A DNA stretch of 64,000 bases from Neoconidiobolus thromboides FSU 785 (Eukaryota > Fungi > Entomophthoromycota). The DNA is taken from contig MU626287.1 of NCBI GenBank assembly GCA_025603075.1, positions 1 through 64,000 of the forward strand. Reading direction: 5' to 3'. The notes beneath the pieces are model-generated. The model did not search any database and had not been told where the DNA came from. It saw only the letters and a list, made by a program, of their open reading frames with translations. Below, piece by piece: positions 2,111 through 28,642 of this stretch (position 1 is the stretch's first letter; each line of letters begins with the position of its first letter). The translations under genes were made by a program, and so were the position numbers.

Positions 2111-2783
2111 ATACATTTGAACTAAAATCAAATAAAATTAAGGAAAAAGTTTAATATTTATGTTGTTTATATTATGTTTATTGAAAGTTGAACCTTGAAA
2201 TTTTTATATCAGCTTGTTTAAACGTTTTTTTGATATAAGTCAATAGGTTTGAGAAACCCGTATTAAAGCTTTAGCTTTTTAATACAACTATTAATATCAA
2301 ATAAGTCAAGTTTCTTTACCCTTAAAAGGCTGAAGCCTTGTCTTTCATCATCTAAAATAAAAATAAAAAGTGGGTCAGTATACTTAGGGAAAAGAAATCA
2401 TTAAGAAGATTTATTAAATGATTTTAGTCCAAGTATAAAAATATAACTTTATATGATAGCAATGTTTCTTGTAATGCAAATTGAATTAAAAGTAGATTAT
2501 TGTGACTATAACTAAATTTTAATAGCTAGTTATTTTAAGCATAGCTAAACTAAAATAAATACATGGAATTAATTACAGAGTTTAATATCTAAATAAGGCA
2601 ATATTTGGAATGCTATATAAAGCCTCATATCGAAATTTCAACCCCAATTATCATAGCAATAAGGTTAACAAAAATATTTAATTATAAAAAAAATATAATT
2701 GTTAACTAAAATACATTAGCATTATATTTATGACTGCGTGAATCACCTCATTAGCACAAAATCGCATTATTTCTATAACAACG

Positions 2784-4535
2784 TCAGTCAATTTGAATTA
2801 GTTCCTCATCTTGAGGCAAAGTAGAATCATTTTCCTTCAATTTACTGTGGGACCTGAGCGAATACCTTGTATCTAAAAGTGTTAAAAAACAATTTGACTG
2901 AAAAATTTAAATTACTCTTGTTAATGATGACGATAGACTCAGGTTTCTTAGATATTTCTTTTCGTTTGTTGTCCAGTACTTTTGGCTTTGACATACCTAC
3001 ATCCTTTAAATTACTTTGTTCCTTTATGACCTCAACGTTCTCATCACTAAGCTCTTTGATAGACGATAATTTTCTTTTTGGGAGCTTAATACTAGTTATT
3101 TTATTGCTTATTTTAGTTGAAATTGATGAAGTGATAGAAAGCTGAGTCTTCCTTTTAACTTCTTTATCCCTTGTGTTCTCGAAACTTGCAGTGAGAGGAA
3201 GAGTTGAACTGCTTTTTCTCGATTTTAATTCTCTGTCAAGAGTCATCATTTCTTCATCAAAATCCAAATCATCTAAGGCATCGACTACTAAATCACCAAA
3301 CTGCATTGATGGTAGTCGTCCAGTAATAGCAGAGGTTGCTCTTCGATATCTATTATTACTATTTGGTGTATGTCCTGAGCGTATCGTTACTGATGGAGAA
3401 ATGTAATTACTTTCTACATTCTCTTCAATGCTGGAAACTTCTGAATTTTCTGAACTCTCAGGAATTGCAGGAGATTTCAAATCAAGAGTTTTTTTAGCAC
3501 GACACACAGTAGCTGATGCAGATCTTCTTAAAGTTGGAGCATTACAGTATTTTAAAAACAGAGGTTCAACCTTTTCTACCCAGTTATCCGTTTTGACTTG
3601 GAAATGGTAGTCTACAACATCATCCCATTCAGAACTACTTACTTCACCAAGATTAACGAATACCACCATGCCATTTTTAAAAGAGTGTACAATTTTGGCA
3701 GCTTCTTTCACTAATTTTTTGCATCCAGGAATTTTCAATGAAGTACCCATAATTAATAAGAAATCCGGTTTTTTTCTAAGGTCTTTAACTTGTAAATTAC
3801 CTATTAGATCCCCCTCTGGGTGGTGTTCATTGTATAGTACAATATCTGGCCTTAAGGTACCTTGGGGAAAAGTACGCTTCCCTCTTTCTATCCTATCTTT
3901 GGATATATTTTCGCAAGTTGGGCAAACCGGAGGTTGGCCTTTCATAAAGTCTTTCATATACTCTTTGGAAAATTCGAACTTATGGCTAACTGGTGCCAAA
4001 GTACATATTACTCTAGACATAGAACCATGCAATTGAACTACTTGGGCTTGTTGAGGATCGGGCTTTAATTCGGTATTTAGGGTCAACCCTAATTCTAAAT
4101 CATCAATGTTTTGAGTATAGCATCTTAATAACTTTTTAGAATCATATAAACGTTTTATAAATCCATGTGTTTGAGTAAATTTGCATTTCAAAATCTTGCT
4201 TTTAAATTTGCCCATAAATTTGTAAAACACATGTGTAGCCTCACGACTTTTAAATAAATTAGCATCAAATAAATCCTTTCCATGTGATATTATGTGTGAA
4301 TTCTCTTTTTTCAGGCTATTAAACAATCCATCTTTAGAGCGAAAATCCTAATTAAGCGTTTAGTTTTAAATGATGTAAAGATTAGCACCCCTACCGGTAT
4401 CCCTGCAGATTGTGATATACCTGCCCCAGTTATAACCATACATCTATTACTTTTTGACAATGCCTTGGAGACCTTTGAATAGCACTCTTCATTGAATTTA
4501 TCAAAAAGTTGCTCTCCATTTATTTTTACTACCAT
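2784..4535 (-). CDS. HST3/HST4: Sir2-family NAD-dependent deacetylase, Hst3/Hst4-like
   Basis: ITGAGISQSAGIP|DFRS across intron 4394-4348; YTQNIDDLE; QLHG; PDIVLYNEHHP; LLIMGTSLKIPG. A small terminal exon is inferred (stop at 2784-2786); the unspliced ORF ends at 2842. Confidence 0.9.
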
Positions 4536-5303
4536 CTTTGTTGGTTGATAAATATCATACAGTTATTTTCTTAAAAGGTAAATAATTAAATTTCACATAT
4601 AAGCAGTGTTTTGTCAATTTTTGCAGATGAGGAGTATCATTTATAAAACTTATTTTTTAGAATAGTTCTTAAAAGTGTTAGAGTGTACAACTATTTTATT
4701 GGTTATATAAAATAAATGAAAGCTTCAGATAAGTTATTATGGAGGAACAGGGCCGAGGAAACTGTGTAGTCCCTAAAGCCAGGATATAGTGATAACTTTT
4801 ATATCTTAGTTTTTAAGTGCTTTAAAACAAATTTAAGGAAACCTCATCTATGAAAATAATAGCTGTAATGATTAATTAATGAGTATCCATACTATTGGGC
4901 GAAATATTCTCATTTATAAAAATGAGTGCCCAACTGTTTTATTCTGTAATTTTAATTCTAGCCTAAAAACAGGTATTAATATACTAATTTTTGTATTCAA
5001 AATTTCAATTATTCACTACTATATTGCTATATTTCATCTAACTTCTCAACCATTTATATTTAAATTTGTAAGAGTATAAATTAAGTAAAAAAGTACACTT
5101 TATAGCCCTGAGTCCAAATACAAACTTTATTAATACCAAACTCTATAACTGTTAAACTTGGTCATAATGAAAACATCTTAAGATTAAGTTATATTAGCTA
5201 CCTCAAAGTAACAATAAAATTTTTACTTGAATGCAATTATTATAATATATGCTTAATAATTTTATTATCATTTGCTACTTACATATTAAATAATATAAGT
5301 GCT

Positions 5304-25931: not shown

Positions 25932-26027
25932 GGGGTTTTTTTTGACTTCATCACTTTTTCTATCTTTTAAGTGCTATTTGAGTGGAAAAATTGTTAGTAA
26001 AATTCTTAAACACAAAAATACAGCCCC
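25932..26027 (-). mobile_element. ~98-bp MITE copy
   Basis: Reverse consensus ending ACAGCCCC; flanks differ (AATT/ATGC). Confidence 0.85.
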
Positions 26028-26099
26028 ATGCAGTTAGAAAAAAGTTATTTGAAATAAAATAATACAGCAATAAGAAACAAAACAGAAATATAAGAAGTT

Positions 26100-27098
26100 T
26101 TCAATAAAGAAAAGTTATACAAATTACATAAATTTTGTGTTGATACTCAAAAAAATATATTTAACGAAACCATTAAAAAAATAAATAATAAAAGTTGTTT
26201 AATAATTCTAGATTTCAAACAGAATATGGAAATAGGAACAAGACCAGATTCAATAAATTTAGATCGTTATAATAAACAAGCTACATCAGTATTAGACTTT
26301 GATGTTTTATATTTAAAAAATGATAAAACAATAGCCAAAGTTTACTTTGATTATTTATCTAAAATATTAAATCATGATCCAGCATATATCAGCAGATACA
26401 CGAAATCATTTTAGATCCCAAGAGTTCCTACATTATATGGGAGTGTTTTTTTTGACTTCATTATTTTTTCCATTTTTTAAGCGTTATTTAAGCGGAAAAA
26501 TTGTTAGTAAAATTGTTAGGTACAAAAATACATTCCCATATGTTTAAAGAAATTCATAAAATAAATAGTAGTTTGAATGTTAATCTTAATTTTTTTGCTG
26601 AGCATCATGGAAAAAGTATAGTTGATGGACATTTTGGAAGCCTTTCAAAATGGAAAAGTAGTTTTGAAGCATTATGTAAAATAGAAGATATCAATCAATT
26701 GATTTCAGGATTTGAGACTTTTATTTGCAAACATAATAAAATTAATAAATCGACTGTTAATAATGGGAAAACAGATATAATTTTTAAAAAGTATCAAGAA
26801 ACAAAAATACAAAAAAGACAATAGAGATACAAGACATTAAGAAGTATTTACACTTTATTAAACATAACAATAAACTGCATTGTCATTCAGTATCTGATAG
26901 ATAAAAAAAAGCGATATAGTTCTAATTAAAGTTATAGAGTCTACAGGACATAGAAGAAGTGAAAGATCGATCCCAGCTTACCTTACGAAAACAACAGAGA
27001 ATTTAAAATTTTCGATATTTACTAAGCAAGTAAGTAGTTTGTCAAATGGTAGAAATATATTATTAAATCCTAACGTTACTCAAGTTATCAATAGTTAA
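26100..27098 (+). pseudogene. Decayed DDE transposase, Sola (Sola2)-like
   Basis: IILDFKQNM...YFDYLSKILNHD and NFFAEHHGKSIVDGHFG in consecutive frames; stops and frameshifts; interrupted by the MITE at 26439-26537. Confidence 0.6.
26439..26537 (-). mobile_element. ~98-bp MITE copy nested in the transposase remnant
   Basis: GGGAGTGT...ACATTCCC; ATAT on both flanks. Confidence 0.9.
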
Positions 27099-27762
27099 GT
27101 TAATAAATAAACTATTTCAATATTTCAATTACATTATTATTATATTACTTGTACTATATAGGGATGATTAATTATAGCTTTGGGGTTAATCATTCCCTCC
27201 TATGCAGCTATTTATTGACTTAGCAATATATTAATAATGTAGTTATAACATTAAAATAGTTTATTTATTTGATATCGAATCTGTAATGTTGGTTACAAGG
27301 CAGTCAATAATAAATGTTTCTCAATAAAGTTTTGTAAGAATATGTATTCAAGATTTAGTAGAAATTCAACTAACTTACAGTATAAACTATAATAGAATAA
27401 TTTAGAACTGTGTTTGGGTACTTTTGTTTTAATAAAAGATGTGATTTTATAGAATTTTAAGCGAAGTTTTTAAAATACAAATTTTTTTAAAAATTGGATA
27501 AAATAATTAAACAAATCCCTGGAATATACTCTAATCCATAGATAATTCTGACAATAACCCCAATACTGTCTCTAACACTGACAGCAGCACTGATATTAAG
27601 GTTAAAATTATCTTTGATACCAGCTCTACCATCAATATCAATGCGACTCTATTGATAAAATTAGCACTAGAAGTGTTATTTAAGCAATTTTATATCGAAG
27701 TCTTTGTCCTATGTTATAGAGTCTTTATTATGAAATAAGTACTTATAATCCAAAGACAATAT

Positions 27763-27888
27763 GGGGATGTCTTTTTGGTTTTACTTTTCCCATTTGAGGA
27801 TGTTTTTTTGATTTCACTTTTTCCATTTTTCAAGCGGTTTGAGTAGAATGATTGTTAGTAAAATTCTTAAACAAAAAGATACATCCAC
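27763..27888 (-). mobile_element. MITE copy with a duplicated ~33-bp end
   Basis: Terminal arm present twice (27763 and 27796); ATAT on both outer flanks. Confidence 0.75.
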
Positions 27889-28642
27889 ATATGATGTATT
27901 AGGATTACTTCTAAACATAAATTACAACCATTTGTTTTATAAAAATCTAAAATGTAAACATTTAAAGCATACAGAAATAGATCCTATCCTCTATTTCTTG
28001 TGTATTTTATAGAATGTAAGCTTTAACGAAAATTTACTGTAAAAGGCTATAGAAAGCCTCCCCATATTACAGTTTGTTTGATTTTTCATGTTAAATTATG
28101 GTAAAATAAATTGTCAAGTTTTTAAAACATTTTACAATAAAAACTATAGAACAAAACAAATACAAACCATTATTTATTTTTTACAAAAATAATCTACTGT
28201 ACTCATTGCCAAGTTCTTCTCATATTAGGTCTGATACCAAGCTTCTACTGCTGATAAGATCTTATAGTCACACTAATACAATACTAAGAAACCTTTTCCA
28301 TTTCGATTTAATGTTCTGGTTACCCATTAATGGACATATATAGACATCCAAGTCCAAAATCAGCGATAAATGGGTTTATTAGCTTGGATTCAAGTATTAA
28401 ATAGCATGTACATATATCAGCTTATCGTAATCAATGTAGTCTTTATAAATTTCATGTTTACATTTAGGGATTGATTGGTTGAGCTAGATTTTAAATTGCA
28501 TAAAGTTGCTTATTTTAGTTGCAAACATCTAGGATTAAATAAAACTATTGGATAGATTTTTTGCTGCGCAATAAAGTCAAAAAGCTTGTCTAGAAATTAG
28601 ATTTAACTTTAGAATCAATGTTAAGAAATTACTTAATCACAA

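Follow-up and report, generated by a model that had tools for sequence, protein, structure and literature searches.

The window analysed here is a stretch of 64,000 nucleotides at the start of contig MU626287.1 (C30 in our numbering) of the entomophthoralean fungus Neoconidiobolus thromboides FSU 785, whose assembly comprises 24.6 Mb in 799 contigs with about 25% G+C. Positions 26028-27519 of its forward strand very probably hold one decayed, 5'-truncated copy of a Sola2-type cut-and-paste DNA transposon, and a miniature inverted-repeat transposable element (MITE) sits inside the transposase reading frame (Table 1). Our high confidence belongs to the explanation as a whole, that is, a fossil copy of the Sola2 superfamily together with the pairing of transposon and MITE at the level of the family.

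When the window was mapped on four paralogs, homology covered 26028-26397 and 26384-26439 and resumed past the MITE, from 26541 to 27516. The DNA between 26067 and 26430 has at least 40 counterparts elsewhere in the genome, 85-91% identical and with E values down to 1e-121; the encoded peptide strings are far beyond chance. Frame 0 encodes ...LYKLHKFCVDTQKNIF...CLIILDFKQNMEIG...YFDYLSKILNHD over 26037-26414; past the MITE, the frame starting at 26540 encodes NLNFFAEHHGKSIVDGHFGSL. The C-terminal part is spread over two other frames because of the 1-bp deletions after 26794 and 26902, and it closes with a stop at 27096-27098, the original stop, five codons upstream, having mutated. An earlier note, made from the sequence alone, had read these strings, the frame past the MITE, and the frameshifted tail, and all of them are present in the window. 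The limits it gave, 26100-27098, lie within the element and are too narrow: a non-coding tail of about 420 bp follows 27098, and the right terminal repeat in which it ends is damaged. A search of the rest of the window for the initial ~900 bp of the element found nothing.

Compared with the majority sequence of 13 paralogs, which we used for this measurement only, the window copy has an identity of 91.7% across 1,377 aligned bases. Two in-frame stops lie near its start. Besides the two single-base losses already mentioned, it has deletions of 2 bp after 26054, 3 bp after 26106, 68 bp after 26383, and 11 bp after 27108. The largest of these falls between short ATAT-containing repeats and took away about 22 codons (AGDCLIDLISTELLFKKFTKIN). 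Since 68 is not a multiple of three, the block with the second catalytic aspartate, ISADTRNHFRSQEFLHYM, is encoded in another frame, at 26386-26436 (open reading frame [ORF] at 26374). The earlier note had supposed that this segment was missing; this was a mistake, as the aspartate codon stands at 26395-26397, frame-shifted by the deletion upstream of it. All three catalytic aspartate codons are kept in the window, each in a different frame. At the right terminal repeat, the window reads ...AATTAAACAAATCCC whereas the paralogs read ...AATGAAACTAATTCAGACAACCCC, and about 9 bp of the repeat are gone. This copy is dead, neither autonomous nor mobilisable.

The nested MITE has genuinely been inserted and has duplicated a 4-bp target site, because ATAT stands on both sides of it and all 13 aligned paralogs have a single ATAT at the site, reading ...CATTATATGTTT... 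/ ...CTACAYTATATRTTT.... Excising the MITE along with one ATAT restores ...FLHYMFKEIHK.... The description of the region as a decayed transposase interrupted by a MITE copy holds. A second MITE, at 25932-26027, stops exactly where the transposon homology starts. On its left, ...ACAATT belongs to unrelated sequence and offers no matching duplication; on its right is ATGC, and this flank, ATGCAGTTAG, corresponds to ATACAGTTAG within intact paralogs, where ATGC reads ATAC. The simplest reading is that this MITE would have been inserted at ATAC and that the upstream part was lost afterward, for example, by MITE recombination. We infer the following order of events. One MITE would have entered at ATAT between the second and third catalytic aspartates and another at ATAC, some 900 bp from the left end. 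All sequence upstream of the second MITE would then have been lost, most simply through deletion or MITE-MITE recombination. The copy would also have gained the 68-bp deletion, at least three more frame-breaking indels, two stops, and the loss of 9 bp from the right terminal repeat.

Table 1. Features of the transposon remnant and its MITEs in the window
Feature	Position	Strand	Remark
MITE copy, 96 bp, 5' end short by ~3 nt	25932..26027	+	At the 5' truncation point of the transposon
Transposase fragment A, ~residues 222-360 of a ~565-aa protein	26028..26438	+	
Fragment A, first catalytic Asp codon	26211-26213	+	Within LDFKQN
Fragment A, second catalytic Asp codon	26395-26397	+	Within ISADTRNHF, frame-shifted
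ATAT, left target-site duplication copy of the nested MITE	26435..26438		
Nested MITE, 99 bp, inside the transposase reading frame	26439..26537	+	GGGAGTGTTTTTTTTGAC ... AAAATACATTCCC
ATAT, right target-site duplication copy of the nested MITE	26538..26541		
Transposase fragment B, C-terminal region	26542..27098	+	1-bp deletions after 26794 and 26902
Fragment B, third catalytic Asp codon	26624-26626	+	Within HHGKSIVDG
Transposon 3' non-coding part	27099..27519	+	Damaged right terminal repeat at its end

The remnant belongs to a large family, with at least 150 transposon fragments in the genome. A paralogous ORF of 230 aa used as a query returned 159 matching stretches, mostly with stops or frameshifts. 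Probes made from the termini found at least 42 left ends and at least 40 right ends at 93-97% identity. When 21 of each were aligned, both showed sharp boundaries at the junction of ATAT with GGGG, and the ends read GGGGYTGTC: the left one continues from ATAT into GGGGCTGTCCTAATTGGTTTCAGAATC... and the right one, read inward, from ATAT into GGGGTTGTCTGAATTAGTTTCATTATT.... The terminal inverted repeat (TIR) is 22 bp long and imperfect, with 18 of 22 positions matching (GGGGYTGTCYKAATTRGTTTCA; left, GGGGCTGTCCTAATTGGTTTCA; right, read inward, GGGGTTGTCTGAATTAGTTTCA), and the target-site duplication is 4 bp, ATAT. An intact element would be about 2.4 kb long with a single ORF of about 565 aa, a protein length pieced together from natural ORFs. 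The best-flanked copy lies on contig C11 at 75995-78349 (L023 = G000:C11:73500-81000, 2495-4849). It has ATAT and a TIR on both sides and contains 344 open codons, followed by an assembly gap of 490 N and then by 54 open codons. This gap is one place where the assembly could hide an intact transposase gene, if the strain has one.

Position 5193 of L023 (...GGACATCTCT, followed by ATAT) was considered as the right end of the C11 copy and rejected, as the alignment of right ends places that end at 4849. The stretch between the two, L023 4850-5193, is an inverted, internally deleted piece of the transposon's 5' region, about 80% identical and ending in AGAGATGTCCAAATTGGTTTCAG when read inward; an older partial copy therefore abuts the younger C11 copy. 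There is also an older layer of the transposon lineage (L067-L074; for example, G000:C11:96000-104000, C53:1-6500, and C13:4500-12000), with about 75% nucleotide and 40-55% amino acid identity to the main family. Several of these older copies carry a repeat of about 470 bp, 80-95% identical between loci, beside or inside the coding region. Many left and right ends of the family lie less than 300 bp from contig ends (for example, G000:C129:91-274, C301:50-219, C348:78-291, and C77:34-247), and the family is probably one of the main causes of the fragmentation of the assembly.

The MITE is far more abundant. The window alone holds 27 matches, about one per 2.4 kb, and about 3,579 candidate places were found genome-wide; the 40 that were scored are all 93-96% identical to the nested copy. 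The consensus is 99 bp long (GGGGRTGTTTTTTTTGGCTTCATTAC ... AAAAATACATCCCC). Identical 4-bp flanks border 13 of the 22 full MITEs in the window: ATAT in 10 cases, GTAT/GTAT in one, and AAAT/AAAT in two. The ATAT pairs alone are weak evidence of duplication, because, given the target preference, flanks agree in 27% of mismatched pairs as well; the GTAT and AAAT pairs are informative. Downstream of the transposon remnant, at 27763-27893, a MITE is preceded by an extra arm that follows ATAT and reads GGGGATGTCTTTTTGGTTTTAC.... This arm matches the transposon TIRs at 16-17 of 30 positions and the MITE end at 17 of 30, and it could be an intermediate or rearranged end.

The MITE and the transposon resemble each other where they end and where they insert. 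The MITE terminus, GGGGRTGT, and that of the transposon, GGGGYTGTC, have seven of the first eight bases in common (GGGGNTGT). Compared without gaps and read inward, the right end of the transposon is identical to the 5' end of the MITE at 31 of 45 positions and its left end to the 3' end of the MITE at 29 of 45; the transposon's own two ends agree with each other at 26 of 45. Over positions 9-45, the right end and the MITE 5' end agree at 24 of 37, compared with 11.9 +/- 2.9 for random 37-mers from the window; none of 100,000 shuffles reached 24. Subterminal identity of the MITE to either transposon end is about 65%. Both insert into the same 4-bp target, ATAT. The MITE looks like some 50 bp of each transposon end, fused and since diverged. 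Because of the end similarity and the identical target site, these comparisons support an autonomous/non-autonomous pair well at the family level, and we infer that transposases of this family would act on the MITE in trans. The earlier note had argued that the transposase class and the signature of MITE ends and target duplications point to the same superfamily, and the GGGG-type ends and ATAT duplications found in both agree with this. When paralog termini were compared with the MITE ends, they did not prove unrelated to GGGGATGT. As for the suggestion that the remnant is a candidate mobiliser of the MITEs, it is supported as a pairing of the two families, through their termini and target, and fails for this particular copy, which is dead.

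Pairs of this kind are familiar from Stowaway and Tc1/mariner and from Tourist/mPing and PIF/Pong, in which a short non-coding element likewise carries the terminal repeats and the duplication of its source. As in those classical pairs, the MITE far outnumbers its source and inserts into decayed copies of the source family. Unlike them, the present case involves the Sola2 superfamily, an early-diverging fungus, and a 4-bp ATAT target rather than TA or TWA.

Some observations weigh against our interpretation at this point. No intact transposase ORF was found in the assembly, where the C11 copy has its gap of 490 N; the longest ORF has 413 aa, and its first aspartate is replaced by asparagine. 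Past the first 8 bp, the MITE and transposon ends are only about 65-70% alike, and a closer autonomous relative of the MITE could exist unseen. The remnant might be Sola2 while the MITE swarm owes its mobility, past or present, to some other autonomous element closer to it, such as one from another Sola2 subfamily, in which case the resemblance of the ends would reflect only shared ancestry of the terminal repeats. The modest identity past the terminal GGGGNTGT would fit this, as would the existence of the older copies, whose ends (for example, AGGGACGCCTGAATTGG... and GAGGGTGTCTGAGTTAG...) resemble both transposon and MITE. We checked the older copies for termini closer to the MITE, and their ends are too decayed to decide. 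In addition, the MITE siblings, at 93-96%, are younger than the window transposon copy, at 91.7% to its consensus. Yet the transposon's two ends resemble each other no more than they resemble the MITE, the target site and the duplication length are the same in MITE and transposon, and the searches made brought to light no other transposase family with ends of the GGGG type. Moreover, the conservation of the transposon ends among copies indicates that the family was recently active. We consider a separate mobiliser unlikely, although it is the most serious competitor to a pairing of the MITE with this transposon family.

To place the transposase among known proteins, we built a profile (A1) from 17 natural ORF pieces and scored it against 1.84 billion protein representatives. 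It matched 769 proteins at E<=1e-3 and 361 at E<=1e-10. Named relatives come from Smittium angustum, S. megazygosporum, Dentiscutata erythropus, and a Thalictrum assembly, as well as from Heterostelium album PN500, Monocercomonoides exilis, and Diplonema ambulator. All are annotated as "hypothetical," and the paralog proteins of N. thromboides FSU 785 itself have been deposited as hypothetical proteins. When the 413-aa ORF was submitted to a word-index protein search, three N. thromboides proteins were the only matches; a 49-sequence alignment as the query brought up nothing but unnamed proteins and proteins of Smittium or Dentiscutata, none of them a named Sola2. P0006 (KAF5186493.1, Thalictrum thalictroides), among the closest relatives outside the species, is encoded on a 1.9-kb contig of a plant assembly, which may be contaminated with fungal DNA or may contain a genuine plant copy. 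In a tree of the family, the N. thromboides copies form their own long-stemmed clade, within a half that also holds the Smittium and Dentiscutata clades, and the published dictyostelid Sola2 proteins fall in the other half. The tree is a quick FastTree reconstruction with a midpoint root and many unlabelled metagenomic rows and is indicative only.

The relatives share a consistent set of motifs. Across 49 diverse members, the invariant residues are D and K of DFK[EQ]N, D of WxDxGxHFR, and H, G, D, and F of HGKxxxDxHF. The catalytic residues D281, D364, and D406, spaced D-83-D-42-D, are invariant in these 49 members and at least 90% conserved in an alignment of 106. The family consensus runs DFK[EQ]N ... 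SxxLxHDS ... NFFxExHGKSxxDxHF, which is the order DF(x)(E/Q)N ... S..L.HD ... HGK that the earlier note had given for Sola2-type transposases. In the N-terminal part, about 70 residues upstream of the first catalytic aspartate, there is a further, nearly invariant motif, TDxCxxC...H (D212/C214/C217/H253 of P0011), whose equivalent in the window is gone with the 5' truncation. It is probably a zinc-binding DNA-binding module; the papers we consulted carry no description of it.

Predicted from a shallow alignment of copies from this genome, the structure was of no use (predicted local distance difference test score [pLDDT] of 50), and the model described here is a confident AlphaFold2 one built from the 106-sequence alignment (pLDDT of 88.0, predicted template-modelling score of 0.79). 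Residues ~170-320 of this model are arranged as beta1-beta2-beta3-alpha-beta4-alpha-beta5-alpha, with one aspartate of the triad on beta1, one where beta4 ends, and one where the helix that follows beta5 begins. Among 48,161 representatives of the PDB, VIA-align placed first a retroviral (lentiviral) integrase core (Z 12.5, root-mean-square deviation of 2.9 A over 144 residues), followed by Metnase (Z 11.8), Mos1 (Z 11.4-11.5), IstA (Z 10.1), and Sleeping Beauty (Z 9.8). The best Foldseek match was IstA (E 9e-5). By its predicted structure, the family protein is a DDE/D-type transposase with an integrase-like RNase H fold. If it works like other DDE/D transposases, the protein would bind to the terminal repeats, cut the element out, and insert it into AWWT targets, for the most part ATAT; cuts staggered by 4 bp would produce the 4-bp duplication.

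The features by which we recognise Sola elements follow Bao & Jurka 2013, Majorek et al. 2014, and Muszewska et al. 2017. Published Sola2 elements have short imperfect TIRs and 4-bp AWWT duplications (ATAT, AAAT, and ATTT). Among them are the Sola2-type elements DFa-2 of Dictyostelium fasciculatum and PPa-1/4/5 of Polysphondylium pallidum, with imperfect TIRs of 12-22 bp, whose transposases are given in Additional file 3 of Bao & Jurka 2013 (PMC3627910). Two proteins in our set could be tied to these elements: P0136 (PPL_04538 of Heterostelium album PN500, that is, P. pallidum) has six of six short motifs of Sola2_PPa-1, and P0085 has three of three of Sola2_DFa-2. The A1 profile, made from the genome's own copies, retrieves P0136 at E 7e-20 and P0085 at E 5.6e-23, so that the Sola2-type class proposed in the earlier note stands. 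With the natural ORF L012:1285-2427 as the query, BLASTP aligned P0136 at 28% identity over 333 aa (E 1e-26) and P0085 at 35% over 230 aa (E 2e-28). The two larger open pieces of the window itself match P0085 collinearly in BLAST (E 2e-11 and 6e-6), the 21-residue piece with the second aspartate being too short for this method.

Sola2-1_HM from Hydra is said to have been the Sola2 type element of Bao et al. in 2009. Its published core reads DFAEN ... HD ... D ... NFF...HG with spacing D-84-D-41 (Majorek et al. 2014, PMC3985635). Compared by eye with the printed cores, the block order and aspartate spacing of the N. thromboides family fit Sola2-1_HM and not Sola1 or Sola3. Also by eye only, the two are alike in DFAEN/DFKQN, ..SDD..HD/SEILNHD, and NFFATSHG/NFFAEHHGK, and both have a DDD triad and a 4-bp duplication. 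They differ in the second-aspartate block, which is FTDGCAGQYK in Sola2-1_HM and IWADTGNHFR in N. thromboides.

With the dictyostelid elements DFa-2 and PPa-1/4/5, the fungal family has in common homologous transposases at 28-35% identity, AT-rich 4-bp duplications, short imperfect TIRs, and the motif series STF[YF]K..P, TDxCxxC, HK.F, DFK[EQ]N, LNH.S, W.D...HF[KR]S, and HGKS..D.HF. In contrast, the dictyostelid elements are chimeras of 10-15 kb with a Fanzor1 gene, transposases of 888-1,060 aa, and termini GGAATATTTATTTCT and TGTTAAATTTT, whereas the fungal element is compact (~2.4 kb, a ~565-aa protein, no passenger gene), ends in GGGGYTGTC, and has a very large MITE family. The fungal family shows significant transposase similarity to recognised Sola2 proteins, a DDD triad on an RNase H-like fold, an AT-rich 4-bp duplication, and short TIRs. 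From these comparisons, we conclude that the family belongs to Sola2 in the sense in which its authors use the name, its relation to the type elements being judged by eye only.

The assignment has evidence on its other side as well. The link to Sola2 depends on how Bao & Jurka themselves classified the elements of dictyostelids, and the register of the second-aspartate motif is WxDxGxHFR here as against FTDGCAGQYK in Sola2-1_HM. Pfam scans of six natural ORF pieces gave no meaningful match. Pfam PF25273 (DUF7869), the one Pfam model to give a signal, is matched at E<=0.01 by five of the 49 members, at best at 2.3e-4, in the region between the second and third aspartates. DUF7869 is also the commonest family among the neighbours found with a protein language model (22 of 30 hits), mostly arthropod clusters, the two nearest clusters having no Pfam family. 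The family might accordingly be a separate DDD lineage, near DUF7869 or another Sola group, that has no more than the 4-bp duplication in common with Sola2, the dictyostelid elements having been loosely classified; the likeness to Sola2-1_HM was judged by eye. However, the two members scored against DUF7869 reached 13.7 and 13.6 bits, well below the gathering cut-off of 26, and the model has no match in the six-frame translation of the genome or among the N. thromboides ORFs, so that we rejected membership in DUF7869. Furthermore, DFa-2 and PPa-1 owe their Sola2 label, and their alignment with Sola2 transposases, to the authors who defined Sola (PMC3627910), and the order and spacing of the motifs match Sola2-1_HM (D-84-D-41 versus D-83-D-42; DF.EN, ..HD, NFF...HG) and neither Sola1 nor Sola3. 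We would be surprised if the family lay outside Sola2, more so than if the MITE had another mobiliser. Finally, a reading of the region as a host gene in decay or as a domesticated transposase, for which only the missing Pfam annotation speaks, is refuted by the more than 150 dispersed and mostly broken copies, by the defined TIRs and target duplications, and by the stops, frameshifts, and truncation of the window copy.

Placed as a Sola2 family, these copies bear on the distribution of the superfamily. A survey of cut-and-paste transposons in fungi recorded Sola2 in a single Aspergillus case and suggested that horizontal transfer brings Sola elements into fungi (Muszewska et al. 2017, PMC5751038). 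The present genome, from the Zoopagomycota, contains over 150 fragments of Sola2 and MITEs derived from it by the thousand, and both Smittium and a glomeromycete have homologues. These findings widen the range of hosts known for Sola2, give a solid fungal record, with an unusually dense MITE derivative, for a superfamily reported to be nearly absent from fungi, and provide a clean autonomous/MITE pair for a superfamily on which no biochemical or structural work is known. The system is not of a new kind, and the locus is an ordinary, well-supported fossil, a dead transposon copy that should be masked and not annotated as a gene. For the assembly, the MITE and transposon family accounts for much of the intergenic repeat content and, probably, of the contig breakage. 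More tentatively, Sola2 may have resided in early-diverging fungi for a long time, at times doing very well there, instead of being a rare horizontal acquisition, an idea we put forward as possible without thinking it the likelier outcome. N. thromboides would then have a compact lineage of ~2.4 kb, whose MITE makes up about 1.4% of the genome and whose relatives in Smittium (Kickxellomycotina) and Dentiscutata (Glomeromycotina) lie in one fungus-rich half of the tree, and this lineage may still be active from the copy that contains the C11 gap.

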